This document shows positions 441 through 28,283 of a stretch of DNA of 64,000 bases, one piece after another. A program made the position numbers and the translations under genes. The notes under the pieces are model-generated. The model worked only from the letters and a program-made list of their open reading frames with translations. It was not told where the DNA came from and ran no database searches. Position 1 is the stretch's first letter. Each line of letters starts with the position of its first letter. Location of the stretch: positions 196,659-260,658 of IMG/VR virus record IMGVR_UViG_3300034012_003212; one strand, written 5' to 3'.

Positions 441-737
441 TTAACCTCGAAGGATGGTGATGCGTCCCTTTGATGCGGTGATTGTGGCAGCTGATTCGTC
501 TATCGGCCCGACTGTGGATTCATGGAGCCTGATTGATCCATCGAGCTCCACTGTGTATGTTGCTATGATCTTCTGTTTCGCCGGAGGATTCTGGGTCATC
601 ACGAGTTCATCGAACCCGTTCTTCCCGTATGTGACATAGACCGTGTCACGGGGGAAAATTCCACAAGCGCGCAGGACTATAGACCAGATGCGAACCCTCC
701 TCCTGCTACATTTTGATATGCCAGTCGTGTTTACCAT
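441..737 (-). CDS. Small hypothetical protein, possibly tandem AbrB/MraZ-like swapped-hairpin DNA-binding fold
   Basis: 98 aa; start overlaps stop of last left-arm LRR gene; two segments (RRRVRIWSIVLRACGIFPRDTVYVT; YTVELDGSIRL) loosely resemble AbrB motifs. Confidence 0.45.
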   Translation of the reverse strand: MVNTTGISKCSRRRVRIWSIVLRACGIFPRDTVYVTYGKNGFDELVMTQNPPAKQKIIATYTVELDGSIRLHESTVGPIDESAATITASKGRITILRG

Positions 738-1126
738 TCAGTGTACTTCAACTTGTGCTTCAGGTGCTTAGGAATCACACCGGGCACATGCACACGGCCA
801 TAGAACCCTGTGTCCGAATCATAAGAGATCTCTTCTCCCGTATGAAGGTCATCAGGCAGCTTCTTGATCCCTGAGCATCTACTAAGATGCACACCTCCTC
901 TAACTATGAGTCCATCAGGCAGCTTCGTGAGGCCCTTGCAATCCCATAGACTCAAATACCCATTCACCTTGAGTCCATCAGGCAGCTTCGTGATCCCTGT
1001 GCAATAATAGAGACGCAGATCGCCATTCACCTTGACAACCTCAAGTGTTCCAAATGAATCCAAAGCCTCCTGGGAACACCTTCGAAGTTCCACCCTCGTT
1101 TCTTCTTCTACATTTATTTCTATCAT
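731..1126 (-). CDS. Short Cys-LRR protein (left arm L9)
   Basis: 131 aa; CSQEALDSFG N-cap, LPDGLKVNGxLxLxxC repeats, TGF..PGVIP C-cap. Confidence 0.93.
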   Translation of the reverse strand: MIEINVEEETRVELRRCSQEALDSFGTLEVVKVNGDLRLYYCTGITKLPDGLKVNGYLSLWDCKGLTKLPDGLIVRGGVHLSRCSGIKKLPDDLHTGEEISYDSDTGFYGRVHVPGVIPKHLKHKLKYTEW

Positions 1127-1151
1127 ATTCAGTTTCTATTTTGGAATCCCT

Positions 1152-1667
1152 TTACACCATCCTCAACTTGTGCTTCAGCCTCTCGGGGATCACACCGGGC
1201 TCGTCCTCATGGCCAGAGAACCCTGTCTCTGAATTATAATATATTCTTCCTTCCACCTGAAGATCTTCAGGCAGCTTCGTGATCCCTGAGCAACCATAGA
1301 GACTCATCCCGCCATTCACCTTGAGATCAACAGGCAGCTCCGTGAGTCCTGTGCAATAATCGAGATTCAATTCCCTATTCACCATGAGGCCATCAGGCAG
1401 CTTCGTGATCCCTGTGCAATAATTGAGAAACAAATACATATTCACCATCAGGCCCTCAGGCAGACTCGCGAGTCCTGTGCAATTTCTGAGACTCAAATAC
1501 CCATTCACCTTGAGATCATCAGGAAGCTTCTTGAGTCCTGCACAATAATAGAGACTCAGATCCCCATTCACCTTAAGGGCCCTGAGGGACCCAAATGAAT
1601 CTAAAGCTTCCTGGGAACACTTCCTGAGGTGTACCCTCGTTTCTAGTTTTACTTCTATTTCTATCAT
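1152..1667 (-). CDS. Short Cys-LRR protein (L8)
   Basis: 171 aa, family architecture. Confidence 0.93.
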   Translation of the reverse strand: MIEIEVKLETRVHLRKCSQEALDSFGSLRALKVNGDLSLYYCAGLKKLPDDLKVNGYLSLRNCTGLASLPEGLMVNMYLFLNYCTGITKLPDGLMVNRELNLDYCTGLTELPVDLKVNGGMSLYGCSGITKLPEDLQVEGRIYYNSETGFSGHEDEPGVIPERLKHKLRMV

Positions 1668-1687
1668 ATTCAGTTTTTATTTTGGAA

Positions 1688-2143
1688 TCAATCCCATTTC
1701 TTCAATTTGTGCTTCAGGCCCTCAGGGATCACTCCAGGTTCATCCTCGTGGCCAGAGAACCCTGTGTCCGAATCATACAAGATGTTTTCTTCCACATGAA
1801 TGCCCTCAGGCAGCTTCGTGATCCCTGTGCAACCATAAAGAATCATACCCCCTTGCACATGGAGTCCATCGGGCAGCTTCGTGATCCCTGTGCAACCATA
1901 GAGATCCAGATGGATTCTAACCTTAAGATCTTTGGGCAGCTTCGTGAGCCCCACGCACCAACGTAGATTCAATTGCCCATTCACCTTGAGTCCATCGGGC
2001 AGCCTTGTGAGCCCTGAACAATTCCTAAAAATCAAATACCGATCCACCTTGACGGCCTCAAGGGACCCAAATGAATCCAAAGCCTCTTGGGAACAATACT
2101 CAAGGTCCACCTTCGTTTCTAGTTTTACTTCTATTTCTATCAT
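1688..2143 (-). CDS. Short Cys-LRR protein (L7); close paralog of 8494..8949
   Basis: 151 aa, family architecture. Confidence 0.93.
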   Translation of the reverse strand: MIEIEVKLETKVDLEYCSQEALDSFGSLEAVKVDRYLIFRNCSGLTRLPDGLKVNGQLNLRWCVGLTKLPKDLKVRIHLDLYGCTGITKLPDGLHVQGGMILYGCTGITKLPEGIHVEENILYDSDTGFSGHEDEPGVIPEGLKHKLKKWD

Positions 2144-2168
2144 ATTCAGTTTCTATTTTGGAATCCCT

Positions 2169-2564
2169 TTACACCATCCTCAATTTGTGCTTCAGCCTCT
2201 CGGGGATCACACCAGGTTCATCCTCGTGGCCGTAGAACCCTGTTTCTGAACCATAAAAGATCTTTTCTCCCATATGAAGGTCATCAGGCAGCTTCGTGAG
2301 TCCTGTACAGCCATTAAGATGCAGATACCCTCCCACAATGAGACCATTAGGAAGTCTTGCGATCCCTGTGCAGTCAATAAGATTCAAATACCCATCCACC
2401 CTGAGACCCTCAGGAAGCCTCGTGAGTCCTGTGCACATAAAGAGATCCAAATCCCCATTCACCCTGACGGACTCAAGGGACCCAAATGAATCCAAAGCCT
2501 CCTGGGAACAATACTCAAGGCGCACCCTCGTTTCTACTTGTATCTTTATCTTCTTCTTTCTCAT
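2169..2564 (-). CDS. Short Cys-LRR protein (L6), MRKKK N-terminal variant
   Basis: 131 aa, family architecture. Confidence 0.93.
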   Translation of the reverse strand: MRKKKIKIQVETRVRLEYCSQEALDSFGSLESVRVNGDLDLFMCTGLTRLPEGLRVDGYLNLIDCTGIARLPNGLIVGGYLHLNGCTGLTKLPDDLHMGEKIFYGSETGFYGHEDEPGVIPERLKHKLRMV

Positions 2565-2590
2565 GTCTTGTTTCTATTTTGGAATCACAA

Positions 2591-2992
2591 CTACCACATC
2601 TTCAACTTGTCCCGTAGGTGGTCAGGGATCACACCAGGCTCATCCTTATGTTTAAAGAACCCTGTGTGTGAGTTATACCATATCTTTGCACCTACAGTGA
2701 GACCCTCAGGCAGCTTCTTGATCCCTTTGCAATATGAGAGATTCAGAATTTCTCCTACTATGAGATCTCTAGGAATCTCTGTCGTTGTATCACGTAGAAT
2801 CAGACCCTCTTTCACCCTGAGATCTCTAGGAAGCTCTTTGAGCCCTACACAACCAGCGAGATTCAGGTACCCATTCACCCTGAGACCCTCTATCCTTCTT
2901 AAGGAGTTCAAGGCCTGCCTAGAACACTCCATTAGAGACACAATAGTAAGCTCAGGTACTTGTATTTTTCCATTTATTTCTGTCATGCTCAT
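2591..2992 (-). CDS. Short Cys-LRR protein (L5), more diverged
   Basis: 133 aa, family architecture with diverged N-cap. Confidence 0.9.
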   Translation of the reverse strand: MSMTEINGKIQVPELTIVSLMECSRQALNSLRRIEGLRVNGYLNLAGCVGLKELPRDLRVKEGLILRDTTTEIPRDLIVGEILNLSYCKGIKKLPEGLTVGAKIWYNSHTGFFKHKDEPGVIPDHLRDKLKMW

Positions 2993-3013
2993 GTTTTATT
3001 TATTTTTTATTTA

Positions 3014-3586
3014 TTAATGCCATCTCTTCAACCTTTCCTTCAGATGGTTAGGGATCACTCCCCGCTTGTCCTTACTTTTAGAGAACCCTGTGACTGAGTT
3101 ATACCAGATCTTTCCTACCACCTGGAGATCTTCAGGCAGCTTAGTGATCCCTTCACAACCGCGTAGATCCAGATCCTTTCTAACTATGAGGTCATCAGGA
3201 AGCTCCGTGAGCCCTGTGCAATTGCATAGATCCAGATCCTTTCTAACTATGAGGTCATTAGGAAGCTCCGTGAGCCCTTCACAATTACTGAGTGTTAGGC
3301 TCCCTCCTACAACAAGACCCTCAGGCAACTCTGTGAGCCCTGTGCAATCTTCTAGATCCAGTCTCTCTCCTACAACAAGACCCTCAGGCAGCTCTGTGAG
3401 CCCTGCACAGTCTTGGAAAAACAGACTCCCACTCACCTTTAGATCATCAGGCAGCCCTGTGCAGCTGACGAGACCTATATTCCCTTTCACCCTTAGAGTT
3501 CCGATCTTCCTTAAGGAGTCAATAGCCTCACGAGAACAACTTCCGGCATTCACTTTCGTGTAATCTTCTACATTTATTGTTACCAT
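3014..3586 (-). CDS. Short Cys-LRR protein (L4)
   Basis: 190 aa, with internal near-duplicate LIVRKDLDL modules. Confidence 0.92.
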   Translation of the reverse strand: MVTINVEDYTKVNAGSCSREAIDSLRKIGTLRVKGNIGLVSCTGLPDDLKVSGSLFFQDCAGLTELPEGLVVGERLDLEDCTGLTELPEGLVVGGSLTLSNCEGLTELPNDLIVRKDLDLCNCTGLTELPDDLIVRKDLDLRGCEGITKLPEDLQVVGKIWYNSVTGFSKSKDKRGVIPNHLKERLKRWH

Positions 3587-3611
3587 ATTCAGTTTCTATT
3601 TTGGAATCCCT

Positions 3612-4001
3612 TTAATATTTCCTCAACTTGCACTTCAGGTGCTTAGGAATCACACCGGGCACATGCACACGGATATAGAACCCTGTGTCTGAATTATAAT
3701 ATATAACTCCTATCAGATGAAGATCTTTAGGCAGCTTCGTGATCCCTGTGCAATTTCTGAGGTTCAGAAGCCCTCCCACGGTGAGGCCATCAGGCAGCTT
3801 CTTGAGTCCTGCACAATAATAGAGACTCAGGTTCCCTCCCACAGTAAGGCCATCAGGCAGCTTCGTGAGGCCTGTGCAACCCACCAAATACAAACCCCCA
3901 TTCACCTTAGGGGACTCAAGGGACCCAAATGAATCCAAAGCCTCTTTGGAACACTCTCTAAGGACCACTAACGTTTCTTTTCTTACCTTTATTTCTATCA
4001 T
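3612..4001 (-). CDS. Short Cys-LRR protein (L3)
   Basis: 129 aa, family architecture. Confidence 0.93.
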   Translation of the reverse strand: MIEIKVRKETLVVLRECSKEALDSFGSLESPKVNGGLYLVGCTGLTKLPDGLTVGGNLSLYYCAGLKKLPDGLTVGGLLNLRNCTGITKLPKDLHLIGVIYYNSDTGFYIRVHVPGVIPKHLKCKLRKY

Positions 4002-4023
4002 ATTCAGTTTCTATTTTGGAATC

Positions 4024-4476
4024 TTATTTATATTTCTTCAACTTGTGTTTCAGTCTGTCAGGGATCACACCGGGCACATGCTCATGGCCATAGAACCCTG
4101 TCAATCCATTATAGTAAATTGTTTCACCCACATGAAGGTCATCAGGCAGCTTAGTGATCCCTGAGCAACCATAGAGAAACAAATACCCCACCATGAGGTC
4201 ATCAGGCAGCTCCGTGAGCCCTGTGCAGCCTACTAGATTCAAATACCCATTCACCATGAGATACACGGGCAATTTTTTGAGCCCCTTGCGGCCACTAATA
4301 TCCAAATCCCCATTCACCCTGAGGCCCCCAGACAGCTTCGTGAGCCCCTTGCAATCATAGAGACTCAAATGCCCATTCACCTTGAGGGCGTCAATCCTTC
4401 CTAAGGAGTCAATAGCCTCCTGAGAACAGCCCCTAAGGTTCACTGTTGTTTCTTCTTCTACATTTATTTCTATCAT
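4024..4476 (-). CDS. Short Cys-LRR protein (L2)
   Basis: Start set at the ATG following the conserved leader; family architecture. Confidence 0.93.
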   Translation of the reverse strand: MIEINVEEETTVNLRGCSQEAIDSLGRIDALKVNGHLSLYDCKGLTKLSGGLRVNGDLDISGRKGLKKLPVYLMVNGYLNLVGCTGLTELPDDLMVGYLFLYGCSGITKLPDDLHVGETIYYNGLTGFYGHEHVPGVIPDRLKHKLKKYK

Positions 4477-4501
4477 ATTCACTTTATATTTTGGAATCCC
4501 T

Positions 4502-5086
4502 TTACACCATCCTCAACTTGTGCTTCAGCCTCTCGGGGATCACACCAGGTTCATGCTCATGGTCATAGAACCCCGTGTATGAATTATACCAGATGACTCC
4601 ATCTACATTAAGATCATCAGGCAGCTTAGTGATCCCCTTGCAATCATAGAGATCCAAATCCCCATTCACCTTGAGTCCATCAGGCAGCTTAGTGATCCCC
4701 TTGCAATCATAGAGACTCAAATACCCATTCACCTTGAGACCGTCAGGCAGCCCTGTGAGCCTTATGCAATGATTGAGAGCCAAATCCCCATTCACCATAA
4801 GATCATCAGGCAGCTTCGTGATCCCTGTGCAACCATAGAGATCCAGATGCCTTCCAACCTTAAGATCTTTGGGCAGCTTCGTGAGCCCTGTGCAACCACG
4901 AAGACTCAAATACCCAGCCACCATGAGATCATCAGGCAGCTTCTTTATCCCTGTGTGTTTCCATAGACCCAGATCCCCATTCACCTTGACAACCTCAAGG
5001 GACCCAAATGAATCCAAAGCCTCTTGGGAACACCTTCCAAGGTTCACTATTGTTTTTTCTTGTATCTTTATCTTCTTCTTTCTCAT
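4502..5086 (-). CDS. Short Cys-LRR protein (L1), MRKKK variant, 6 internal LRRs
   Basis: 194 aa, family architecture. Confidence 0.93.
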   Translation of the reverse strand: MRKKKIKIQEKTIVNLGRCSQEALDSFGSLEVVKVNGDLGLWKHTGIKKLPDDLMVAGYLSLRGCTGLTKLPKDLKVGRHLDLYGCTGITKLPDDLMVNGDLALNHCIRLTGLPDGLKVNGYLSLYDCKGITKLPDGLKVNGDLDLYDCKGITKLPDDLNVDGVIWYNSYTGFYDHEHEPGVIPERLKHKLRMV

Positions 5087-5122
5087 GTCTAGTTTCTATT
5101 TTGGAATCCAACGAACCCTAAT

Positions 5123-5287
5123 CTACACAAAATACCAGTGTGATCGTGCAGCTTCTTCGTATTCTTCTTCGTCCTCTTCATCCTCGTCTTCGTAGTCCTC
5201 TTCGTACTCATCAGAATCATCAGGAGGAAAGAACCACGGGGCGGTGGGCCTTACGAACACTGCGAACTTTGTCTCGGGGTCTTTCAT
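5123..5287 (-). CDS. 54-aa highly acidic peptide (MKDPETKFAVFVRPTAPWFFPPDDSDEYEEDYEDEDEEDEEEYEEAARSHWYFV), first gene of left operon
   Basis: ATG at 5287 directly downstream of GATATATA; stop is followed by a copy of the LRR leader repeat; 3' part of the 5123..5437 track ORF. Confidence 0.65.
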   Translation of the reverse strand: MKDPETKFAVFVRPTAPWFFPPDDSDEYEEDYEDEDEEDEEEYEEAARSHWYFV

Positions 5288-5292
5288 GGTTT

Positions 5293-5300
5293 TATATATC
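5293..5300 (-). promoter_or_regulatory. GATATATA putative late-promoter motif heading the left arm
   Basis: Same octamer precedes portal, 43193..45688 and gp15-like genes; analogy to T4 late promoter TATAAATA. Confidence 0.55.
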
Positions 5301-5540
5301 ACGCGGGGCGTGGTGTTACATTGTGCTACAGGGAGGCTGGGGTGGAAGAGAGGGCCCCAGGGGGAACGCGCGCCAGGATTGACCAGGTGACTCGAAAGGG
5401 AAAATGGGTGGGGTAACATGGGTATGATGAGTTTCATTAGACCTGGGTGGAACAGTAGTGTCAGAAAATGAACAGGGGTAAAGGGTCGGGGGTTTTTTAA
5501 AAAAACATTTATATTGTATCAACCTCATCCGCTTTCCGCT

Positions 5541-5701
5541 CTCCTGGGCAAAAAGTGCCCTGGTTGTGCCCATTCACATATCACCCTCATGGGCAAAACG
5601 TTCCGTGGCTGCGCCTTTTTGTATACCGTACCCTCCTGGGCAAAAAGTTCTATGGCCCGGGCGAGTCCACTTACTGTGCCCTCCTGGGCCCTCAGTCCTG
5701 G
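5541..5701. repeat. Four iteron-like direct repeats, core CTC(C/A)TGGGC(AAAA)
   Basis: Copies start at 5541, 5586, 5633, 5681 (spacing 45/47/48 bp). Confidence 0.7.
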
Positions 5702-6012
5702 TCCTTGGTCCTTGGTCCTGATTGTCTTGAGGGCCTGTGCGAGTGTGTCCTGACAGAACAGAGGGGTGGAACTGATTCATCTACTCTGTTCTCAGGTTTC
5801 CTTGTCTTTTTTCTTCTTTCTCTCTGTGGGTGTGGGTGGATCTTCTGGATCCTGTGCCCCCTTTTGATCTTCTCTCTCTCTCTTTCTTTCCTTTCTTCCA
5901 GGCTGGGTTGGGTGTGAGTGTGAGTGTGAGAGGAGGGTCATTCCTTTTTCTGGTCCTTCTGGTTGTTGGTCGGTGGGCACACAGAGAGAGTGGGGGGTTC
6001 TGGCATCTTGGA

Positions 6013-6045
6013 GGGTTTTTTTTTGGAGGGGGAGGGGGAGGGGGG
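6013..6045 (+). other. G-quadruplex-capable motif G3-T9-GGA-G5-A-G5-A-G6
   Basis: Read directly from sequence; three long G-tracts joined by 1-nt loops plus a fourth tract. Confidence 0.6.
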
Positions 6046-6219
6046 TGTGAGTAAAAATGTTATTTTTGTTATTTTTGTTAGTTGGAGTCTTCTTCCCGGG
6101 TCTGATCATCAGAGGGAAGATGTTGGGCCGTTGTGGTTATGAAGAGAAGCTGATCCGTCATCGGGCACAGGGGCGATGATTTTAATGGCAGAAGGTTCCA
6201 TCAGGGGTGGTTTATTTTT

Positions 6220-6227
6220 GATATATA
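6220..6227 (+). promoter_or_regulatory. GATATATA putative late-promoter motif heading the right arm
   Basis: Exact octamer 57 bp upstream of first right-arm LRR ATG, facing outward from the spacer. Confidence 0.55.
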
Positions 6228-6283
6228 CAGCCCACCGTGGATTATGAATAGACGGCGCGCGCTAGGTGAAATAAAAACTGAAT

Positions 6284-6802
6284 ATGATAGAAATAAATGT
6301 AAGAAAAGAAACGTTAGTGTACCTTAGAGAGTGTTCCAAAGAGGCTTTGGATTCATTTGGGTCCCTTGAGGCCCTTAAGGTGAATGGGCATTTGGATCTC
6401 TATTATTGCACTGGGCTCAAGAAGCTGCCTGATGGCCTAATGGTGAATGGGGATCTGAATCTCTATGGCTGCACAGGACTCACGAAGCTGCCTGATGATC
6501 TTAAGGTTGGAAAGCATCTGATTCTATGGAGTTGCCCGGGGCTCACAGAGCTGCCTGATGATCTCAAGGTGAATGGGAGTCTGAATATATGGAATTGCAC
6601 GGGCCTCACGAAGCTGCCTGAAGGGCTCAAGGTTGAAGGGACTCTGGATCTATGGTATTGCACAGGGATCACGAAGCTGCCTGAAGATCTTCAGGTGGAA
6701 GGATTCATATATTATAATGAAGGCACAGGGTTCTATGGACATATGGATGAGCCTGGCGTTATCCCTAACCACCTGAAGAACAAGTTGAAGAAACGTAAAT
6801 AA
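6284..6802 (+). CDS. Short Cys-LRR protein (R1)
   Basis: 172 aa, family architecture. Confidence 0.93.
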   Translation: MIEINVRKETLVYLRECSKEALDSFGSLEALKVNGHLDLYYCTGLKKLPDGLMVNGDLNLYGCTGLTKLPDDLKVGKHLILWSCPGLTELPDDLKVNGSLNIWNCTGLTKLPEGLKVEGTLDLWYCTGITKLPEDLQVEGFIYYNEGTGFYGHMDEPGVIPNHLKNKLKKRK

Positions 6803-6824
6803 GACTTTAAAATAGAAAGTGAAT

Positions 6825-7220
6825 ATGATGGAAATAGAGGTAGATGTAGAAACGAGTGTGGTCCTCCGAAGGTGTTCCCAAGAGGCTTTGGATTCATTTG
6901 GGTCTCTTGAGGCCGTCAAGGTTAATGGGGATTTGGGTCTGCACCGTTGCACAGGGCTCACGGAGCTGCCTGATGATCTCAAGGTGGATGGGTATTTGAG
7001 TCTATATGGTTGCCCGGGGATCAAGAAGCTTCCTGGGGGCCTCAGTGTGAATGGGGACCTGGATCTAGGTCATTGTCCAGGGATCAAGGATCTTCCTGAA
7101 GATCTTCAGGTGGAAGGAAGCATATATTATAATTCAAAGACAGGGTTCTCTGGCCATGAGGACGAGCCTGGCGTGATCCCTGATCATCTGAAGAACAAAT
7201 TGGAAAAATATGGTAGATGA
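6825..7220 (+). CDS. Short Cys-LRR protein (R2)
   Basis: Start at leader-aligned ATG; shares 120-bp identical patch with R25. Confidence 0.93.
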   Translation: MMEIEVDVETSVVLRRCSQEALDSFGSLEAVKVNGDLGLHRCTGLTELPDDLKVDGYLSLYGCPGIKKLPGGLSVNGDLDLGHCPGIKDLPEDLQVEGSIYYNSKTGFSGHEDEPGVIPDHLKNKLEKYGR

Positions 7221-7242
7221 GATTCCAAAATAGAAACTGAAC

Positions 7243-7632: not shown

Positions 7633-7656
7633 GAGATTCCAAAATAGAAACTGAAT

Positions 7657-20732: not shown

Positions 20733-21185
20733 ATGATAACAATAGAAATAAGAAAAGAAACGACAGTGAACCTTAGAGGGTGTTCTCAAGAAGCACTTGA
20801 TTCCCTGGGAACGCTTGACGCCCTCAAGGTGAATGGGGATTTGAGTCTATGGCGTTGCACAGGAATCACAAAGCTGCCTGGGGGCCTCAGGGTGAATGGG
20901 GATTTGAGTCTATGGGGTTGCACAGGAATCACAAAGCTGCCTGGGGGCCTCAGGGTGAATGGGGATTTGAGTCTATCGGGTTGCACAGGAATCACAAAGC
21001 TGCCTGGGGGCCTCAGGGTGAATGGGGATTTGAGTCTATCGGGTTGCACAGGAATCACAAAGCTGCCTGAAGATCTTCAGGTGGAAGGAGTCATATATTA
21101 TAATTCAAAGACGGGGTTCTATGGCTATGAGCATGTGCCTGGTGTGATCCCTGATCATCTGAAGAACAAGTTGAATAAATGGTAG
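20733..21185 (+). CDS. Short Cys-LRR protein (R33) with four near-identical 63-bp modules
   Basis: 150 aa; VNGDLSL(WR/WG/SG/SG)CTGITKLP repeated. Confidence 0.93.
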   Translation: MITIEIRKETTVNLRGCSQEALDSLGTLDALKVNGDLSLWRCTGITKLPGGLRVNGDLSLWGCTGITKLPGGLRVNGDLSLSGCTGITKLPGGLRVNGDLSLSGCTGITKLPEDLQVEGVIYYNSKTGFYGYEHVPGVIPDHLKNKLNKW

Positions 21186-21211
21186 AGAAGATTATAAAAT
21201 AGAACCTAGAT

Positions 21212-21601: not shown

Positions 21602-21627
21602 AGAAGATTATAAAATATAAATTGAAT

Positions 21628-22077
21628 ATGAGAAAAAGGAAGATAAAGATAGGAGATTTTACATTCGTGGATATTAGGTCCTGTTCTCAGAAGGCAATGG
21701 AATCCATAACATCATTGGACAATAAGTTAAGGATCAAGGGATATTGGTGGTTTAACAATCTCACGAGAATTCCTGAAGGACTTAGAATTGACGAAGATCT
21801 GGATCTCTATGAGTTCGGATTCAAAGAGCTGCCTTCTGGCATAAAGGTTGCGGGAAGTTTGTCTCTTTCTGATTCAACAGAACTCGCTGGACTCCCTGAT
21901 GACCTCAAAGTGGGAAAGAATTTGTATTTAGGCGGATGCAAAGGACTCTTGTCTCTTCCTGCGAGTCTTCAAGTAGGAAGATATATTTACTATGATACAC
22001 GAACAGGATTCTATGATCATATTCGTGAATCTGGTGCCATCCCTGTAGGCCTCAGGCGTAAATTGAAGAAGTATTAA
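21628..22077 (+). CDS. Short LRR protein (R35), diverged
   Basis: Start at leader-aligned ATG (MRKRKIKIG). Confidence 0.9.
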   Translation: MRKRKIKIGDFTFVDIRSCSQKAMESITSLDNKLRIKGYWWFNNLTRIPEGLRIDEDLDLYEFGFKELPSGIKVAGSLSLSDSTELAGLPDDLKVGKNLYLGGCKGLLSLPASLQVGRYIYYDTRTGFYDHIRESGAIPVGLRRKLKKY

Positions 22078-22089
22078 TGGGATTTCAAA

Positions 22090-22503
22090 ATGCAAACTGG
22101 ATATGAAAAAAAAGCTATAGAAATACAAGTAGGGGAAGTAGGGACCGTAAAACTCAATGGCTGCTCCGGGTGTGCATTAGACAGTATTATGTCTCTTTCA
22201 CGTCTAAATGTCAGAGGACACTTGATTCTATGGGATTGCTCAAACATCAATAAGCTTCCTGATTGCCTAAATGTGGTTTGGGATCTATGTCTCCAAAGTT
22301 GCGAAAACCTCACTAAGCTTCCCGACGATCTCAAGGTAGGAAGGAATTTGTATATTTACGGATGCATAAAGCTCAAGAAGCTGCCCGAGAGCCTTCAAGT
22401 TGGGGATCTTATTTTATACAACGTCTTCACTGGATTCAGAAGAAGTGACCCAGGAATCCCCTTTCACTTACTCGATAAAATAACAGATGTTGGCAAAAAA
22501 TAA
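22090..22503 (+). CDS. Short LRR protein (R36); leader-aligned ATG (22103) is out of frame because of an A8 run
   Basis: Open frame only from ATG 22090; ATG22103-AAA-AAA-AAG-CTA-TAG stops at once. Confidence 0.8.
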   Translation: MQTGYEKKAIEIQVGEVGTVKLNGCSGCALDSIMSLSRLNVRGHLILWDCSNINKLPDCLNVVWDLCLQSCENLTKLPDDLKVGRNLYIYGCIKLKKLPESLQVGDLILYNVFTGFRRSDPGIPFHLLDKITDVGKK

Positions 22504-22512
22504 ACACTGGTC

Positions 22513-23055
22513 ATGAAACATCAGATAAAGACACAAGAAATATCAGTCATTAATCTTAGGGAATGTTCTCAAAAGGCACTGTATTCCATAAAATACATGC
22601 ATGGTTCGTTCAATGCGCAGGGTTGGTTGATCCTCTCGGGTTGCATAGTACTTGATGGGCTTCCCGATACACTCAAAATAGCGGAGCGTTTGAATCTCCA
22701 TGGTTGCACAGGGCTCAAGAGCCTGCCTGATGGTCTCAAGATCGGAGGGAATTTGCACCTTAATCGGTGCACTGGACTCATTAGTTTGCCCGATGGACTC
22801 ACCGTGGGAGGGAATTTGTATCTCAATGACTGCACAGGGCTTAAGAGTTTACCTAATGGCCTCAGTATTGCAGGGGATTTGAATCTCTCGGGATGTGCAA
22901 ACATTAAAACGTTACAGAAAGATCTACGTGTAGGAGGATATATCAAATATGATGAATCAACAGGATTCTATGATCATATATATGAACCAGGGGTGGTTGA
23001 ATACTTAATGAACGGCGGTAGATTCCAGAAAGTGATGAGATACGATATAAACTGA
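22513..23055 (+). CDS. Short LRR protein (R37), diverged
   Basis: 180 aa; LRR modules and TGF C-cap retained. Confidence 0.9.
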   Translation: MKHQIKTQEISVINLRECSQKALYSIKYMHGSFNAQGWLILSGCIVLDGLPDTLKIAERLNLHGCTGLKSLPDGLKIGGNLHLNRCTGLISLPDGLTVGGNLYLNDCTGLKSLPNGLSIAGDLNLSGCANIKTLQKDLRVGGYIKYDESTGFYDHIYEPGVVEYLMNGGRFQKVMRYDIN

Positions 23056-23060
23056 GCACG

Positions 23061-23456
23061 ATGACAAAGATACATATACGCAAAGTAACAGAAGTGAAAC
23101 TCGTTCAATGTTCACAGCGTGCGCTGAACTCTATAATGTTTCTTGATGGTAAGTTAAAAATCAAAGGACATTTGAATCTACGATGGTGTAGGGGAATCCC
23201 AAAACTCCCAGATGAACTCATGGTTGAAGGTAGTGTTGGGCTCGATCATTCGTATACAGTCAAAATACTTCCTATTGGGCTCAGGATTGGAGGCAGTCTG
23301 TGGATCCGCGGTAGCATGATATCATCACTTCCTGATGATTTGCAAGTTGGAGATAAAATATACTATAGTTACAGAAAGGGATCACAGAAGGATGAAAGAT
23401 TTTTTAGGGAGATTCCAAGTCACCTCATAAATAAACTATATGGCATTGAAACGTGA
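23061..23456 (+). CDS. Short LRR protein (R38), diverged
   Basis: 131 aa; CSQRAL N-cap and LPDDLQVG retained. Confidence 0.88.
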   Translation: MTKIHIRKVTEVKLVQCSQRALNSIMFLDGKLKIKGHLNLRWCRGIPKLPDELMVEGSVGLDHSYTVKILPIGLRIGGSLWIRGSMISSLPDDLQVGDKIYYSYRKGSQKDERFFREIPSHLINKLYGIET

Positions 23457-23474
23457 TTCGAATATAAACAATCC

Positions 23475-23876
23475 ATGATAACAATAAAGATAGAAGAAGA
23501 AACTTTAGTCAATTTTCAGAAATGTACACAAGCTGCATTAGACTCCATTTTAGTGCTTGATGACAAGATAAGGGTCAAAGGATGCTTGAGTTTCTGGGGA
23601 TGCACTGGAATTACGACGATTCCTCGCGGAATTATCGTATCGGAGGAACTGAATTTATGGTATTGTAAGAATCTTGTAACACTTCCTTCTGGGATTGGGG
23701 TTGGATTAGATTTACATCTAGGTGCCTGTGAACTTCTCCTGTCGCTTCCCGAAGATCTGAGAGTGGGAGGCAGGATTCGATATAATTACAGAACCGGTTT
23801 ATCCGGCCATGAGCATGAACGCGGTGTGATACCAAATAACTTACGGAAAAAAATGATTAAATCAGTATATTGGTGA
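23475..23876 (+). CDS. Short LRR protein (R39), diverged
   Basis: 133 aa; GHEHERGVIP C-cap. Confidence 0.9.
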   Translation: MITIKIEEETLVNFQKCTQAALDSILVLDDKIRVKGCLSFWGCTGITTIPRGIIVSEELNLWYCKNLVTLPSGIGVGLDLHLGACELLLSLPEDLRVGGRIRYNYRTGLSGHEHERGVIPNNLRKKMIKSVYW

Positions 23877-23894
23877 AAAATAAAATTAAACACT

Positions 23895-24353
23895 ATGATT
23901 GAGATAAAGGTAAAAGAATCAGCGGTTGTAAAATTTATCTGGTGCTCTGATGATGCACTTAAATCTATAGAAGGACTAAGGAGGTTGACGGTTTATGGAA
24001 GATTGGACTTATATCAATCTAAAATAAAAAGGATTCCTGACAATACTATGGTTGAAGGAATTCTATCAATAGATTATTGCAGAAAAATAGAGAATCTTCC
24101 TACTGGACTAGTGGTCGGAGGTAACCTAGAACTACAGGAATCTACTCATATACGGAACTTGCCAGAGGACTTATTAGTAGGAGGGAACATGAACCTCATG
24201 GGTTGTAGCTTAATTAAATCCCTTCCAAAAGGTCTGCGTTTCTCTGGAATTATCTTTTGTGATTCTTCCACCGGGTTCTCAGATGAAACAATATGGGGAA
24301 GAAATTGGAGGCACCATATTCCAGACCATCTTAAAGATAAATGCTGGAAATAA
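23895..24353 (+). CDS. Short LRR protein (R40), diverged
   Basis: 152 aa; LPxGLxVGGxLxL modules. Confidence 0.88.
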   Translation: MIEIKVKESAVVKFIWCSDDALKSIEGLRRLTVYGRLDLYQSKIKRIPDNTMVEGILSIDYCRKIENLPTGLVVGGNLELQESTHIRNLPEDLLVGGNMNLMGCSLIKSLPKGLRFSGIIFCDSSTGFSDETIWGRNWRHHIPDHLKDKCWK

Positions 24354-24488: not shown

Positions 24489-24890
24489 ATGAAAGACAAT
24501 TACGATTTTGATACGCGCGTTAACTTAAGCAACTGCCCTTTACGAGTGATAGACAATCTTCCTATAGGGATGAAAATAAAAGGAATTCTCAATATAGTTG
24601 GAATTAAAAAGGATTTCTCCCTTCCTGAAGGATTATGTGTATCTTGGCTCATGCAGTTAATAGGGGCAGTGAAACTAAAAAGCCTTCCACGCGATATGAA
24701 GATAGGCGGATGGATCAATCTACTTGATTGTCAATCACTACTCGATTTACCTGATGATATCTTTATATGTGGTGGAGTGTGGTATAATAAAGAAACTGGA
24801 TTTATCGCAGCAGGACAAGACATACATGAACTAGAGGAGCGCTTTAGGGCAGAATTTAACATGTTTAACTCCAGCACTATAACACGATGA
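24489..24890 (+). CDS. Short LRR protein (R41), strongly diverged
   Basis: 133 aa; VNLSNC N-cap, YNKETGF C-cap. Confidence 0.85.
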   Translation: MKDNYDFDTRVNLSNCPLRVIDNLPIGMKIKGILNIVGIKKDFSLPEGLCVSWLMQLIGAVKLKSLPRDMKIGGWINLLDCQSLLDLPDDIFICGGVWYNKETGFIAAGQDIHELEERFRAEFNMFNSSTITR

Positions 24891-25487
24891 ATATATCACA
24901 AATATGTACAGTAGATTTCAGCAAGTGTGATCAAAAGGTGTTTGATAGTATGAAGACAAATTCATGCATAAAAGCACTAACAATAATCAGTCGGAATCCT
25001 AGAATCAATAAGCTTCCCGATGGATTGCATATTGGTGGTTACGTTGATATTAGCCGATGCAAAGGAATCGAGGACCTCCCCGGGGGGTCTGAGAGTTCTA
25101 CACGGCATAATGATGATAGAGACTCGAATAAAAGAGATTCATTCTGATGTGGTTGTTCTCGGCGAAATCGATCTACATGGAAGCCAAAGATTTAACAAAA
25201 TCCCTGAGAACTTTACGGTATACGATGATTTATGTTTATCTGGAATCCCAATCAGTAATCTCCCAAAAGGATTACATGTACTAGGTAATCTGTTTGTTCG
25301 TAACTGTGAATTTCTCAAGGATCTTCCCGATGATTTACGTGTATCTGGTACAATCTATTATTCAGAGAAGACGGGGTTCTACAGAGATAAACGTAAATTT
25401 AATAAATTAATTAAACGGTTAAATCTTCGGATTCCCCCTGACTCCGATTTATACTCAATACAGTTATGGAAGAAAAAGCAAGAATAG
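24887..25487 (+). pseudogene. LRR gene (R42) frameshifted at C4-G6 tract (25078-25087)
   Basis: ORF 24887..25147 carries the N-cap and ORF 25020..25487 the remaining LRRs and C-cap; deleting one G joins them as DLPGGLRV (~199 aa). Confidence 0.8.
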
Positions 25488-25900
25488 ATATAGGCGCATG
25501 TAGTTTACGCGCACTCCGGAGTCTACCCCATGGGATGTGTGTCTGCGGTGCGTTGATATCCAAAACCCGGGTTGACCCTATGTTTCTGCCTGAACAACTA
25601 AGGGCGTTGAAGCTTGACTTATACAATTGTCAAGGGGGTGTTGAGGTTTCCCATGGGACATGTATTGCAGACGGTATGTTTCTGGAAAAATGTAGGATAT
25701 CAAAATTACCCACGGGTCTAATTGTAGGTGACTTAATATATGTATCCAACTGCAAAGATCTAATGGATCTACCCAAAGATATGTTGTTGTCATTGGATGG
25801 TAGAGTATATTACAATAATCACACAGGGTTTGCTGGTAATAAAGAGAAACTAGAGGAGTTGCAAGAAAGGTTCCCTGGACAAATAAAAACCTTGTTTTGA
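25466..25900 (+). CDS. Short LRR protein (R43), strongly diverged
   Basis: 144 aa; IDIGACSLRAL N-cap, YYNNHTGF C-cap. Confidence 0.85.
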   Translation: MEEKARIDIGACSLRALRSLPHGMCVCGALISKTRVDPMFLPEQLRALKLDLYNCQGGVEVSHGTCIADGMFLEKCRISKLPTGLIVGDLIYVSNCKDLMDLPKDMLLSLDGRVYYNNHTGFAGNKEKLEELQERFPGQIKTLF

Positions 25901-25913
25901 AAGTAAGAATTAA

Positions 25914-26210
25914 TTGAGTGTTCAGATAAAAACAAATTTTTTGAATAGTGTTGTGTGTGAAGAACTTTTTCTCTTTGGCGTTACATCAGGTTTTTTTTTG
26001 AAGTGGATCGATTCCGTCGTCTTCGCAAAATTCATCTTCTTGAAAGATTTGTACAACTATGTTAATGGTGATTTTGTGCCTTACAGGGGGGAGCTCCACA
26101 ATTTGAATATTATCACAGCGAAAGTGAAAGATGGGCTATTTCTCACAAGAAGTATGGATGAACTTCCTAAAAATGCCAAAGTCTTAGACGACAAGAATCA
26201 CAATAGTTAA
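25914..26210 (+). CDS. Hypothetical protein within distal array
   Basis: 98 aa ORF, TTG start, same strand; no clear LRR. Confidence 0.55.
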   Translation: MSVQIKTNFLNSVVCEELFLFGVTSGFFLKWIDSVVFAKFIFLKDLYNYVNGDFVPYRGELHNLNIITAKVKDGLFLTRSMDELPKNAKVLDDKNHNS

Positions 26211-26224
26211 TAAAAGAATATGAT

Positions 26225-26683
26225 ATGAGTAAAAATAAACTTTCAAATAGTAATCCAAAAAACGACAAGGCAGTTGTCATGTTTAAGAAAGGAAATTTGA
26301 GGTTTCCCAATGGAATCAAGGTCAATGGAATGTTGACGATACATATTGCTGCAAATATCGAGATCACAGGTGATATTGTCTGCGATTATCTGAACCTAAA
26401 TTCTCTATTTTCTGCCATGCCTCTTATCGTGAGTACGAGATTCATATGCAAAACTGCATCACTGCGTACTGTTGTGCTTCCTAGTGAATCTTTTCAAGAT
26501 TGGATTCATAATGTGATATTCGTAGAAAAAATCACACTTCATTACTATATGCACCATGCAGTTACTACAGCTATAGAATCTTCACAGGAAGAAGAAAATT
26601 ATTCGTACCTCGATAAACTAGGATTTAAAACAGATTTTGATACATACAATCATCTGATAATCAGAAGGAAAGGGGATGCATGA
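26225..26683 (+). CDS. Hypothetical protein, possible degenerate LRR-family member
   Basis: 152 aa; FPNGIKVNGMLTI resembles LPDGLKVNGxLxL. Confidence 0.65.
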   Translation: MSKNKLSNSNPKNDKAVVMFKKGNLRFPNGIKVNGMLTIHIAANIEITGDIVCDYLNLNSLFSAMPLIVSTRFICKTASLRTVVLPSESFQDWIHNVIFVEKITLHYYMHHAVTTAIESSQEEENYSYLDKLGFKTDFDTYNHLIIRRKGDA

Positions 26684-27165
26684 TGAAATATCAGGAGTTC
26701 AAAACAAACATAAATGATGCTAATTTTCTTCCCTTTTCAGGTGTTAGCAAGATAACTATAAGGGATCTTTCGAAGATATCTGTGAAGAATCACATAAGAG
26801 TCCGAGGGGTGATGTCTTTGGCCACAAAGGTTGATATGAATTCTGATCTCACACACACATTCCCTCATGGGTTCTCGTGTGAAACACTAGAGTTTGCTAG
26901 AGGACTTGTATCAACAATTTTAAACAGTACTGGATTGATTGGGCCCTCGTTCAAGTTTCTTGAGCTGAACGTATTTCTTTTTTTTATGCCTTTACACGCA
27001 GCGAGAGACATCATCAAGTCTCATGATGAATGTCTACGGGTATACTGCAAAACGGACTTAAGCAATAGTGACAAGGATCTCAAAGGAACTGGTTTAAAAT
27101 ATTTACCTGTTGCAAAAAGTAATACGCCCAGAGAACTATACTGGACTATAGTGAGTCGAAAGTAA
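26680..27165 (+). CDS. Hypothetical protein, possible degenerate LRR-family member
   Basis: 161 aa; IRVRGVMSL and FPHGFSC faintly match the family. Confidence 0.65.
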   Translation: MMKYQEFKTNINDANFLPFSGVSKITIRDLSKISVKNHIRVRGVMSLATKVDMNSDLTHTFPHGFSCETLEFARGLVSTILNSTGLIGPSFKFLELNVFLFFMPLHAARDIIKSHDECLRVYCKTDLSNSDKDLKGTGLKYLPVAKSNTPRELYWTIVSRK

Positions 27166-27239
27166 AAGGCTACGTAAGATCTATGAGATTTTGCAAGTTC
27201 ACATAAGAATATATAAAAGAAGAGAAATGATGTAGAGTT

Positions 27240-27884
27240 ATGATAGATGAACTTAAAATAAAAACAATCACAGAAATAAAATTGCAACGCTGCGAAGGAC
27301 CAGTAACGAATAATCTCCCAAGGGGCATGAGAGTGGACGGCAATTTAATATTTGATTATAATCCGGATCTGATTAAAGCGCCAGACGATCTTCTAGTTAA
27401 TGGGTCCTGTTCATTTAGAGCGTGCGACAATCTTAAACACGTGTCAGAGAATTTAATCGTCAAAGACTCATTATTGATCCAATACTGCCAAAATATTACT
27501 GAATTGCCAAAAGGGATGATTGTATACCGCCTATTTCTTAGTGCGAACAAGAATCTAAACAAAATTGCAGAAGATATATCAGTCAGGTTATTATCCATGC
27601 GGGGGTGCGTCAATATCAATAAACTTCCTAAAGCATTCGCCGGAAGGAGTATGGTATTCCTTGATATAAAGAATTCTGCTATTGATGAAATACCAGATGG
27701 AATGAATTTGGAATTGCTCAACATAGAAGGATGCCGGTCTATCCAAGATCTTCCTCAGAGTCTGACTGTCATCGATGAAGTAGTGTATAATGCTGACACC
27801 GGATTTGCATCTGACAAGAAAAAAATCAAAGAGCTCAAACAAAGGTTTAGGATGAGGTTTGCGCGAAATAGAAGGTGGAGATGA
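27240..27884 (+). CDS. LRR protein (R44), diverged, longest member
   Basis: 214 aa; EIKLQRC N-cap, YNADTGF C-cap; AATATATA at 27208-27215 upstream. Confidence 0.88.
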   Translation: MIDELKIKTITEIKLQRCEGPVTNNLPRGMRVDGNLIFDYNPDLIKAPDDLLVNGSCSFRACDNLKHVSENLIVKDSLLIQYCQNITELPKGMIVYRLFLSANKNLNKIAEDISVRLLSMRGCVNINKLPKAFAGRSMVFLDIKNSAIDEIPDGMNLELLNIEGCRSIQDLPQSLTVIDEVVYNADTGFASDKKKIKELKQRFRMRFARNRRWR

Positions 27885-27920
27885 TGAAGACCGTAAAAAT
27901 AAATAAATAAAATCATCAAA

Positions 27921-28283
27921 ATGCTGAAAAATATAGCCATTTTCACAACAGTGGAGATCGACAGAAATACTGTGATAAGGGATGGGTCAAAAATAAAAGG
28001 CAATCTTCGTATAGGGTATAGGTCAAAAACTTTACTAAATCTACCAGTAGGACTTAGAGTAAAAGGCGACATAAATTTATACTATGAGCAGGATTTAGTT
28101 TCGCTTCCAGAAGGACTTGTAGTATTACATGATATTGATCTACGAGGTTGTATGGAATTGAAATACATACCTACAGATGCAATCATAGGCGGCGAGATAC
28201 ACTATGACGGTAACACATATGAAAAAACTGTAGATGTATTGAAGAAACGATTTAAAGGTAAGGTGATCTATGATAATGATTGA
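27921..28283 (+). CDS. LRR protein (R45), most distal and diverged
   Basis: 120 aa; LPVGLRVKGDINL and LPEGLVVLHDIDLRGC. Confidence 0.82.
   Translation: MLKNIAIFTTVEIDRNTVIRDGSKIKGNLRIGYRSKTLLNLPVGLRVKGDINLYYEQDLVSLPEGLVVLHDIDLRGCMELKYIPTDAIIGGEIHYDGNTYEKTVDVLKKRFKGKVIYDND

Follow-up and report, generated by a model that had tools for sequence, protein, structure and literature searches.

The 64,000-nucleotide stretch of DNA that was analysed (the window) belongs to a 260,658-bp (260.7-kb) IMG/VR contig of a phage related to Lak and other huge phages. Between positions 731 and 28283 the window carries 54 paralogous leucine-rich repeat (LRR) genes, 9 oriented leftward and 45 rightward, one of which is split by a frameshift (Table 1). 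The family profile matched 55 open reading frames (ORFs) in the window with E-values of 1e-10 to 1e-106, all located within 734-28280; as the split cassette was counted once, these ORFs correspond to 54 genes. This census is in agreement with the original prediction of 9 leftward and about 45 rightward short paralogous LRR genes. Cassettes of the right arm core are spaced by approximately 20-25 nt. At the right end of the array the GC content drops to 0.365, and the family profile detected no membership for the ORFs 25914-26210, 26225-26683 and 26680-27165. The only broken copy in the array is the cassette with the C4G6 run, and the first observation that almost all cassettes are intact was verified (53 of 54 open).

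Table 1. Coordinates of the features identified in and around the LRR array (positions within the window).
Feature	Position	Strand	Basis
Left arm, 9 tandem LRR cassettes, 129-194 aa	731..5086	-	ORFs and translations; family HMM, E 1e-46 to 1e-102
Central region between the arms, divergent, GC-rich, without a family gene	5087..6283		Sequence, repeats, GC skew
Possible 54-aa very acidic ORF, head of left arm	5123..5287	-	Translation of 5123-5437; ATG position after TGATATATA
Candidate promoter TGATATATA, head of left arm	5293..5301	-	Motif comparison within the window
Candidate promoter TGATATATA, head of right arm	6219..6227	+	56 nt ahead of first ATG
Right arm core, 40 clear tandem LRR cassettes, 108-180 aa	6284..24353	+	ORFs and translations; family HMM
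16-nt intergenic motif ATTCCAAAATAGAAAC, example copy	7222..7237	+	One of 38 copies
Cassette with three near-identical internal 63-nt repeat units	20733..21185	+	Translation; L006 and P0002 comparison
Right end, AT-richer, 5 divergent family genes and 3 non-family ORFs	24489..28283	+	HMM, E 1e-10 to 1e-33
Divergent family gene	24489-24890	+	
Divergent family gene, split by frameshift	24887-25147 plus 25020-25487	+	
C4G6 homopolymer run, frame shift in one cassette	25074..25086	+	Sequence; two pieces match family HMM separately
Divergent family gene	25466-25900	+	
Divergent family gene	27240-27884	+	
Divergent family gene	27921-28283	+	

The encoded proteins are 108-214 aa long and are composed of a conserved N-cap, two to six repeats with a period of exactly 21 aa and a conserved C-cap, ending approximately 35 aa past the last repeat. 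Among the 49 clear genes, three repeats were found in 24, four in 14, five in 7, and two or six in 2 genes each. Conservation is far higher in the caps, with nearly invariant TGF and GVIP motifs, than in the repeats, which contain the LxxLxLxx(N/C)xL-type core of the LRR superfamily (L5, L7, C10, L16, P17 and L20 nearly invariant). Each protein contains 2-8 cysteines arranged as a ladder, and the pI values range from 4.4 to 9.7 with many acidic members. Neither a hydrophobic segment (largest 19-residue Kyte-Doolittle mean 1.42) nor a signal-peptide-like N-terminus was detected in the family proteins, as had been expected from the first inspection of the sequence. AlphaFold2 returned a confident beta-solenoid (pLDDT 93.8, pTM 0.87) with one short strand per repeat and with caps that are ordinary structural solenoid caps, which matches the predicted arrangement of an N-cap, 21-aa LRR modules and a C-cap. 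The modelled strands span repeat positions 3-8, so that positions 4, 6 and 8 face outward. The top matches by sequence and fold were all LRR domains (FlrP 8Z5U, RPP1, Roq1, NRG1A and the SspH1 LRR). Profile-to-PDB sequence matches to LRR proteins were significant, FlrP 8Z5U being the best (E 5.6e-20), and LRR domains were also the top matches in the fold search of PDB and BFVD, where no PDB match fell below E 1e-3. Among the curated LRR models, Pfam LRR_EndoS and LRR_1 matched the family only below their gathering scores. Model and sequence matches together identify the cassette products as LRR solenoids.

Variation among the repeats is concentrated at four positions (4, 6, 8 and 9, with an entropy of 3.0-3.6 bits), three of which (4, 6 and 8) are outward-facing on the beta-strand; entropy is below 0.9 bits at V1, L5, L7, C10, L16, P17 and L20. 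The 138 repeat units display 119 distinct four-residue signatures, and the outward-facing residues are rich in Tyr, Gly, Asp, Asn, Ser, Arg and Trp, a mix that resembles a protein-binding site. The dN/dS values, which are pairwise counts on recombining paralogues rather than the output of a recombination-aware site model, were 1.94 (bootstrap 1.50-2.40) at the variable positions 4, 6, 8 and 9, 0.23 in the scaffold, 0.65 in the N-cap and 0.44 in the C-cap. A dN/dS near 1 everywhere, which had been named beforehand as a sign of neutral amplification, is ruled out by the contrast between the variable positions and the scaffold. The pattern of high values at the variable positions was also seen against the cassettes of the relative L002. 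On these counts the predicted binding face is diversified by positive selection, with the scaffold and the caps under purifying selection. The use of syntenic L002 cassettes as orthologues was rejected, as position-matched cassettes themselves differ.

Repeated DNA within a short-read metagenome assembly, on a contig that terminates inside another repeat, may represent an assembly artefact, or else a neutral or selfish amplification without function. An independently assembled contig from another sample is, however, 100% identical over 5,543 nt and 12 genes, which speaks against the concern raised earlier about the assembly. The copies differ by 15-59% and are therefore not collapsible repeats: the closest paralogue of any copy is 41-85% identical, with no pair above 85%. 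Under neutral substitution at half of the observed divergence, approximately 8-16% of copies would be expected to stay open, while 53 of 54 are intact despite a nucleotide divergence of 27% among them; the description of the copies as intact and individually varied was thus upheld. Taken together with the approximately eight-fold difference in dN/dS between site classes, the agreement of the independent assembly and the intact, distinct copies led us to reject artefact and neutral amplification, to which we assign the lowest probability of all the alternatives considered.

Exact tracts shared between cassettes reach 120 nt, compared with a median of 19 nt, which shows gene conversion between cassettes, and protein variants from other samples were found to be mosaics of window cassettes. 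Diversity is spread across separate genes rather than confined to one variable region of the kind targeted by a diversity-generating retroelement. In this huge T4-like phage, the gene for a small, soluble LRR beta-solenoid with caps has undergone a lineage-specific expansion. The array grows by duplication, an inverted duplication having given rise to the left arm, and its cassettes also change as 21-aa repeat units are gained or lost and as gene conversion acts between copies. The intergenic motif and the cap-coding DNA probably provide the homology for recombination, which is probably driven by the phage's own UvsX and gp46/47 machinery. The cassette with three internal 63-nt units contains one unit fewer in the independent assembly.

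The central region between the arms contains three direct repeats of approximately 45 nt (5526-5660) and G-runs near 6010-6045, and the GC skew changes its sign there. Each arm is headed by the 9-mer TGATATATA, a candidate promoter element. The left-arm copy is followed 5 nt further on by the ATG of the small acidic ORF, for which no family match was obtained in PADLOC, and the right-arm copy is the inverted-repeat partner of 5288-5301. The 9-mer is also located upstream of the genes 43193-45688 and 45746-47254, and AGATATATA was found upstream of the portal gene. As the candidate promoter heading the arms also lies ahead of the portal gene, the array could be expressed late together with structural genes. 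Pfam and tblastn searches with the genes preceded by TGATATATA, employed to date the expression class, gave nothing useful; one ORF of 502 aa has counterparts only in LR756500 and the Lak phages. The motif ATTCCAAAATAGAAAC is positioned 5 nt ahead of nearly every cassette ATG. Its 38 copies (1132-22097) compare with 1.4 chance matches expected in the window, only one match (with 3 mismatches) lies outside the array, and the motif is exact in the relative L002 (84% identical). Scans for sigma-70 promoters and terminators revealed no excess inside the array, Shine-Dalgarno sites are rare across the whole window and the Rfam search found no RNA family. Both arms are probably read from the central region as long polycistronic transcripts, and the A-rich intergenic motif probably represents a Shine-Dalgarno-free translation start.

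The window encodes a portal protein (phrog_213; 41% identical to LR756500 and 36% to Lak phages), SbcCD-like gp46/47, a DnaB-like (gp41-like) helicase, a UvsX-like RecA, a family B DNA polymerase and topoisomerase II. It also contains a very large gene for a collagen-like fibre. The portal and the replication-recombination core assign the phage to the T4-like (Straboviridae-like) huge phages related to Lak and Mahaphages, which fits its initial classification as a T4-like jumbo phage. The host may belong to the Bacteroidota. Smaller LRR arrays with different caps, of at least 12 and of 6 genes, were detected in two other metagenomic phage contigs. No comparable array was found in GenBank phages, and a nucleotide search of these with the array and the core region gave no match. 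In tblastn searches, a typical cassette, a divergent one and two from the second type of array retrieved only Edno5 and one Vibrio phage, and no arrays. Scans of IMG/VR with the family alignment, two flanking proteins and a 24-nt motif returned only the array's own contig, and nothing was found in JGI metagenome contigs and GTDB genome contigs by peptide pattern or DNA motif; the alignment of all 49 sequences proved too variable to serve as a search pattern. Long multi-repeat LRR proteins dominated the 22,098 clusters from the profile search of all libraries, and the capped family could not be singled out among them. Single small phage LRR proteins (Edwardsiella phage Edno5 gene 0047 and BFVD entries A0A6J7X9U5, A0A6J7X691 and A0A6J5LZF9) belong to the same LRR class, with 35-52% identity over the repeats and a size similar to that of the cassettes. 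These uncharacterised proteins, however, occur in 1-3 copies per genome with different or absent caps, whereas the array comprises 54 capped copies. Single-copy relatives are located in early or accessory phage regions (L003; Edno5, beside repressor and RecT genes). The view that related repeats in phages are usually single genes is borne out by the Edno5 and BFVD relatives. The accompanying claim that such an array was undescribed in phages holds insofar as the literature search found no published description, but the array is not unique in view of the two smaller ones.

The best explanation, to which we assign a probability of about one half, is that this expanded, positively selected and recombining capped-LRR family constitutes an intracellular protein-binder repertoire. 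The proteins would work inside the infected cell as specific binders, each directed at a single variant of polymorphic host or competitor proteins, which it would block or sequester. Possible targets are defence sensors or effectors, abortive-infection or interbacterial toxins and proteins of rival phages; the array would then be the phage counterpart of a polyimmunity or anti-defence locus. Like the original prediction, we infer from the array a library that neutralises defence or rival-phage proteins inside the cell. Pfam, PHROGs, NCBIfam and PADLOC identified no toxin, defence or anti-defence family within the array or next to it, and no toxin domain was seen among the scanned proteins of the window, the analysis having covered these 64 kb plus about 2 kb of the 260-kb contig; the array proteins had no match in PADLOC and no meaningful PHROG match. 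If the binders are specific, the array provides 54 or more small, stable LRR scaffolds with a cysteine ladder, a natural library shaped by selection against real bacterial targets. It would then lead directly to the host proteins that a huge phage needs to neutralise, and engineered binders could be built on a new scaffold. The occurrence of the same design with different caps in two other metagenomic phage contigs suggests a general strategy missed by isolate-based genomics. It is a tentative extension that large T4-like phages keep germline-encoded, recombination-shuffled capped-LRR repertoires, possibly codelivered with the DNA, which would recognise and disarm polymorphic host immune or toxin proteins as a viral counterpart of VLR/NLR-type recognition, the 54-gene array being the extreme of a wider undescribed class that includes the 12- and 6-gene arrays. 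If the proteins are specific binders, phages, like large eukaryotic viruses, meet host immune diversity with expanded, positively selected multigene families, and their answer to host immunity goes beyond single inhibitors.

The main rival, although unlikely, holds that the proteins are late virion-associated adhesins or fibre-tip adaptors that form a host-range repertoire, dock by their conserved caps and display many different receptor-binding surfaces, or that they are packaged and injected. LRR and beta-helix domains have been proposed as host-recognition modules in the fibre proteins of phage Goslar, and BspA-type LRRs are present in phage tail proteins. The conserved caps could serve as docking elements, the collagen-like fibre gene shares the window and TGATATATA stands at the head of both arms as well as ahead of the portal gene, even though its timing class is putative. 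Proteins of only 108-214 aa without a recognisable fibre-attachment or trimerisation domain argue against adhesins, as do the single-copy relatives in temperate phages, which reside in early regions outside tail modules. Intracellular LRRs typically have a cysteine ladder and many unpaired cysteines, and the ladder of the family proteins likewise speaks against a place on the virion. Inspection of the N-terminus by eye revealed no T4-type capsid-targeting or protease-cleavage motif. Less probable again are substrate adaptors, in which the variable face picks the target and the invariant caps hand it over to one common partner such as a host protease or a phage enzyme, on the principle of LRR proteins combined with an E3 ligase or an F-box. 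Strong conservation of the caps relative to the repeats, with nearly invariant TGF and GVIP, would suit such a role, and the repeat class of the family is fused to NEL E3-ligase domains in bacterial proteins. The model nevertheless depicts the caps as ordinary structural elements, and the proteins have neither a catalytic nor a recruiting domain, nor an identified partner; NEL catalytic domains are absent from the cassettes and appeared only in long bacterial matches of the profile search.

Two further readings are given very little weight. A repeat code for the sequence-specific binding of nucleic acids, as in TALE or pumilio proteins, would account for few hypervariable residues per repeat and a variable repeat number, and for LRR proteins of Dictyostelium a comparable idea has been put forward (PMC10392669). 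Yet each protein has only 2-6 repeats, many members are acidic within a pI range of 4.4 to 9.7 and the residue mix is that of protein-binding surfaces. Marginally less probable still are effectors aimed at a eukaryote with which the bacterial host interacts. The repeat class is closest to the LRRs of plant NLRs and of secreted bacterial effectors, but the effector matches are limited to the LRR part and far below family cut-offs (NCBIfam effector models 15-24 bits against 450-1243), a secretion signal or effector domain is lacking and the context is that of a lytic-type huge phage.

Among known systems, the binder repertoire is reminiscent of the polyimmunity loci of polymorphic toxin systems, an established precedent that includes LRR immunity proteins (Zhang et al. 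2012, PMC3482391). Like the array, these loci are tandem sets of small cytoplasmic binders that are distant paralogues of one another; their proposed role is to neutralise many toxin variants, and the LRR scaffold is among their recorded immunity folds (PMC3482391). They are located on bacterial chromosomes, usually beside a toxin gene and in far fewer copies (PMC3482391), whereas the array resides in a phage, with no toxin gene seen and 54 copies of a single family. A Flavobacterium psychrophilum locus, from the same phylum as the array's host if the latter is indeed a member of the Bacteroidota, contains as many as 19 LRR genes in tandem that differ in repeat number; as in the array, hypervariable positions lie on one face, the intergenic regions are conserved and the copies recombine with each other (PMC10392669). 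Those bacterial proteins are secreted and anchored at the surface, with a signal peptide and a C-terminal domain for type 9 secretion, and their locus is littered with gene fragments (PMC10392669), while the phage cassettes are almost all intact, carry no export signals and belong to a different LRR class. Traits of Bacteroidota surface LRRs (BspA-like) were absent from the cassettes, which have no hydrophobic N-terminus, a short C-cap only and no LRR_5 match. Lamprey VLRs and plant NLR LRRs are also capped LRR solenoids with diversity on a beta-strand face rich in Tyr, Asp and Asn, and plant TNL LRRs were among the best sequence and fold matches of the phage family. The array, however, lacks somatic assembly as well as an NB-ARC or TIR signalling domain, and its diversity is germline-encoded as separate genes in a virus. 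FlrP (PDB 8Z5U), an LRR spacer of the Vibrio polar flagellar motor and the closest solved structure by sequence, is likewise a small capped beta-solenoid of matching repeat class, but it is a single-copy periplasmic protein that carries a Sec signal peptide and serves a structural function on the flagellar rod. Large eukaryotic DNA viruses carry ankyrin, BTB and MGF multigene families. In Bacillus phage G, a zinc ribbon has expanded to roughly 35 copies (PMC7824862). What these families share with the array is that a very large viral genome has gained many copies of a small binding scaffold in a lineage-specific manner. The array differs from them in its scaffold and in its clear site-specific positive selection; it resides in a prokaryotic virus, in contrast to the eukaryotic-virus families, and its copy number is above that of phage G.

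Listing the ORFs of the window and translating them revealed densely packed short genes throughout 731-28283. A family profile HMM, constructed on an alignment (A1) of 49 clear members, matched 55 ORFs of the window, every one within this interval; the 1.9 kb preceding the window gave no match. One divergent gene is broken at a C4G6 run near 25074-25086, where the HMM scored its two pieces separately. The family amounts to 54 genes, 9 leftward, 40 clear rightward and 5 divergent rightward, in agreement with the original prediction of 9 leftward and about 45 rightward paralogues. Membership of three ORFs at 25914-27165 was not detected by the family HMM. As also predicted, every family protein has a tripartite build: an N-cap (about 31 aa; core CSQEALDS, nearly invariant), two to six repeats of exactly 21 aa (2, 24, 14, 7 and 2 genes with 2, 3, 4, 5 and 6 repeats, respectively), and a C-cap (about 35 aa; TGF invariant, GVIP nearly so). 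The expected lack of signal peptides and transmembrane segments was borne out, since neither a hydrophobic segment nor a signal-like N-terminus was found in the array proteins, which contain 2-8 cysteines and span a pI range of 4.4-9.7. In cassettes 7657-8076 and 9322-9741 (both + strand) the usual stop codon is gone and translation continues through the conserved intergenic motif, giving a common tail of 8-10 extra residues.

The AlphaFold2 modelling that had been proposed was carried out for gene 6284-6802 with the paralogue alignment as input and returned a confident LRR-type model (pLDDT 93.8, pTM 0.87). Each modelled repeat forms a single short strand spanning repeat positions 3-8; a strand and a helix form the N-terminal cap, and a helix and a strand the C-terminal one. 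When PDB sequences were searched with the profile, the small flagellar-motor LRR protein FlrP of Vibrio (8Z5U, E 5.6e-20) ranked ahead of plant TNL LRR domains (RPP1, Roq1). Leading Foldseek matches in the PDB were nearly all LRR domains, none with E <1e-3; the best matches in BFVD came from uncultured phages and were small "leucine-rich repeat" proteins (30-42% identity), and curated models matched below threshold only. The repeat class is very common (22,098 clusters, mainly long bacterial proteins, some with fused NEL ligase domains), and the family is defined by its caps and small size, not by its repeat class. Across 138 in-register repeat units, entropy reaches 3.0-3.6 bits at positions 4, 6, 8 and 9 and stays below 0.9 bits at V1, L5, L7, C10, L16, P17 and L20. 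Positions 4, 6 and 8 are predicted to point outward on the sheet because they alternate with core leucines within the modelled strand, and the outward face of an LRR sheet is the classical LRR binding face. The variable positions are composed of Tyr (17%), Gly (15%), Asp (15%), Asn (13%), Ser (8%), Arg (6.5%) and Trp (5%), among other residues, and 119 different four-residue signatures occur across the 138 units.

Two other origins of such an array, an assembly artefact and neutral amplification, are effectively excluded. The array is real: window 15464-21006 (12 genes) is matched at 100% identity by contig L006, an independent assembly from ENA sample ERZ27272050, and beyond this stretch the contig departs through a single 63-nt repeat unit within gene 20733-21185. 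Closest paralogues are only 41-85% identical at the protein level (median pairwise identity 49%), which also speaks against an artefact. Selection was assessed with Nei-Gojobori counts on 19 three-repeat genes, with 95% intervals from a bootstrap over genes; dN/dS was 1.94 (1.50-2.40) at the hypervariable positions 4, 6, 8 and 9, 1.56 (0.87-2.88) at positions 0, 2 and 11, 0.65 (0.54-0.91) in the N-cap, 0.44 (0.34-0.57) in the C-cap and 0.23 (0.20-0.28) in the scaffold, all values being pairwise counts on recombining paralogues and not a site model. The cassettes of the related phage contig L002 gave a like contrast (2.4 versus 0.35). If 10-15% of sites are substituted at random, only 8-16% of genes stay free of stop codons; the array has 53 of its 54 genes open, with a median nucleotide distance of 27%, so the description of the copies as almost all intact holds, with the one split gene as the exception. 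A dN/dS near 1 everywhere, named at the outset as the mark of neutral amplification, is clearly not what these site classes display.

With the anatomy and mode of evolution of the array established, we give a probability of about 0.5 to the array being a putative repertoire of specific protein binders that would target polymorphic proteins of the host or of competitors inside the infected cell. This reading is favored because the products are soluble capped solenoids whose face resembles a binding site and evolves fast, all else being conserved. A virion-associated repertoire of adhesins or packaged proteins is the main rival and is rated less likely; the candidate promoter element of the array bears on it. 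In the central region between the arms, the 9-mer TGATATATA is directed into each arm; it also occurs upstream of two non-array genes, its form AGATATATA precedes the portal gene, and the sites stand 5-56 nt upstream of gene starts. The element may be a phage promoter of the extended -10 type, and a late class would mean that the array is expressed along with the virion proteins, as the rival would have it. Roles as adaptors or nucleic-acid binders, or directed at a eukaryote, are less probable.

A second element, the 16-nt motif ATTCCAAAATAGAAAC, sits 5 nt upstream of nearly every cassette ATG (38 array copies, 25 of them exact); in a window scan its only match outside the array has 3 mismatches, which is chance level. 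This motif is under selection, as it is the best-conserved stretch of the repeat unit and is exact in L002 too. It lacks a Shine-Dalgarno sequence and is read as a putative translation-start region for a host not using Shine-Dalgarno pairing; it may alternatively serve as a dedicated promoter or anchor recombination. Sigma-70-like promoters and terminators are not in excess in the array. The GC-rich central region between the arms (5087-6283, 1.2 kb) could be a control region or origin.

Several processes seem to have shaped the array. Paralogue identity comparison yielded the cross-arm pairs 1688/8494, 2169/8079, 1152/6284 and 731/7243, which establish the left arm as an old inverted duplicate of the inner part of the right arm. 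Distant cassettes that have otherwise diverged share stretches of exact identity as long as 120 nt (6825 and 16876), against a median of 19 nt for the longest exact match between cassettes, and these stretches point to gene conversion transferring whole repeat modules. Repeat number varies as well, gene 20733 having three near-identical units and one fewer in another sample. Variants of the proteins in other metagenomes are built as mosaics of cassettes from the window, such as one joining the body of 4024 to the exact C-terminus of 1152; chimeric short-read assembly could contribute to these mosaics. The flank of L002 is 84% identical, yet its syntenic cassettes are different genes. At the AT-richer right end lie the most divergent copies, which therefore look oldest.

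No comparable LRR array was found among GenBank phages (50,697 records), where relatives are limited to one gene each in Edwardsiella phage Edno5 and a Vibrio phage, consistent with the usual single-gene occurrence noted at the outset for related repeats. The Edno5 gene lies in the early region of a cultured temperate phage, between CI repressor and exonuclease/RecT genes, and would be a relative open to experiment. The family is absent from the closest huge-phage relatives, was found in IMG/VR only on the window's own contig, and had no match in peptide-pattern and DNA-motif scans of the genome-contig and JGI contig collections; about 20 close members lie on short contigs from ENA, JGI and Logan. 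Small LRR genes belonging to this repeat class, 1-3 at a time, are also present on other mobile elements. The search for further arrays, proposed in the original prediction, turned up none in GenBank phages; two metagenomic contigs (L020 and L022) carry small-LRR arrays with caps unlike those of the window family. L020, a 13.4-kb ENA contig, has HSP70, RNA ligase, SNase nuclease and ART-PolyVal neighbors, and its paralogues are hypervariable at the equivalent four positions. L022 is a T4-like phage contig with a family B polymerase; its array adjoins a superoxide dismutase and a gp13 homologue, and its paralogues have apparently 20-aa repeats without the cysteine ladder. This arrangement recurs in four contigs from four JGI samples, and the protein on 12 contigs. 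In view of both arrays, the window array is an extreme case of a recurring design. Full-text literature searches found no description of a phage LRR array, as had been supposed. LRRs go unmentioned in a comparative review of 224 jumbo phages, which terms about 35 zinc-ribbon copies in phage G an unprecedented expansion (PMC7824862). The nearest published analogues are a surface LRR locus of F. psychrophilum (PMC10392669) and polyimmunity loci with LRR immunity proteins (PMC3482391).

Coordinates of the array, its candidate signals, neighboring genes and related loci (window positions unless a contig is named)
Feature	Position	Strand	Remarks
Leftward family genes	731-5086	-	9 genes, family HMM
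Possible very acidic ORF	5123-5287	-	54 aa; central region between arms
TGATATATA/AGATATATA sites	5293-5301, 6219-6227, 40984-40992, 45714-45722, 47263-47271	always the gene's strand	candidate promoter
Three direct repeats	5526-5660		about 45 nt each; central region
Long G-runs	~6010-6045		central region
Clear rightward family genes	6284-24353	+	40 genes, family HMM
Divergent rightward family genes	24489-28283	+	5 genes, family HMM
TnsA-like endonuclease N-terminal domain protein	41612-42094	-	Pfam E 3e-22; just upstream of portal gene
Family B DNA polymerase match	53345-55298	-	401-aa ORF, partial Pfam model coverage; adjoins 257-aa ORF
Topoisomerase II large-subunit ORF	58388-60100	-	end of ORF resembles start of Hint/intein domain
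Collagen-like Gly-X-Y ORF	60284-64000	+	at least 1,239 aa; runs off end of window and contig
Edno5 gene 0047	L001:3881-4624		247 aa; seven near-identical repeats, same LRR class
L020 array	L020:5368-12213		12 or more paralogues in tandem; N- and C-caps differ from those of the window family; PfkB kinase gene interrupts the run
L022 mini-array	L022:9904-12582		six tandem small LRR paralogues

The window is the final 64 kb of IMG/VR contig UViG_3300034012_003212, which measures 260,658 bp (window base 1 is contig base 196,659), and its remainder codes for a T4-type portal, a gp46/47-like nuclease, a gp41-like helicase, a UvsX-like recombinase, a family B polymerase and topoisomerase II. The closest relatives of the portal are in the 462-kb uncultured phage LR756500 (41%) and the Lak megaphages (36%), and a 502-aa ORF is common only to this group. 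Given this T4-type core and these relatives, the label "T4-like jumbo phage" is right in a broad sense. Shine-Dalgarno sites are rare across the whole window, with almost no gene having one, which together with the Lak relationship suggests a Bacteroidota-like host. The GC content of the array is 0.44-0.48 versus about 0.40 in the core genes, and its coding strand has a strong positive GC skew. The collagen-like ORF is probably a fibre protein and probably explains why the assembly ends there. The topoisomerase II ORF may contain an intein or be a split gene, the TnsA-like protein may belong to a mobile or homing element, and the DNA polymerase may be split.
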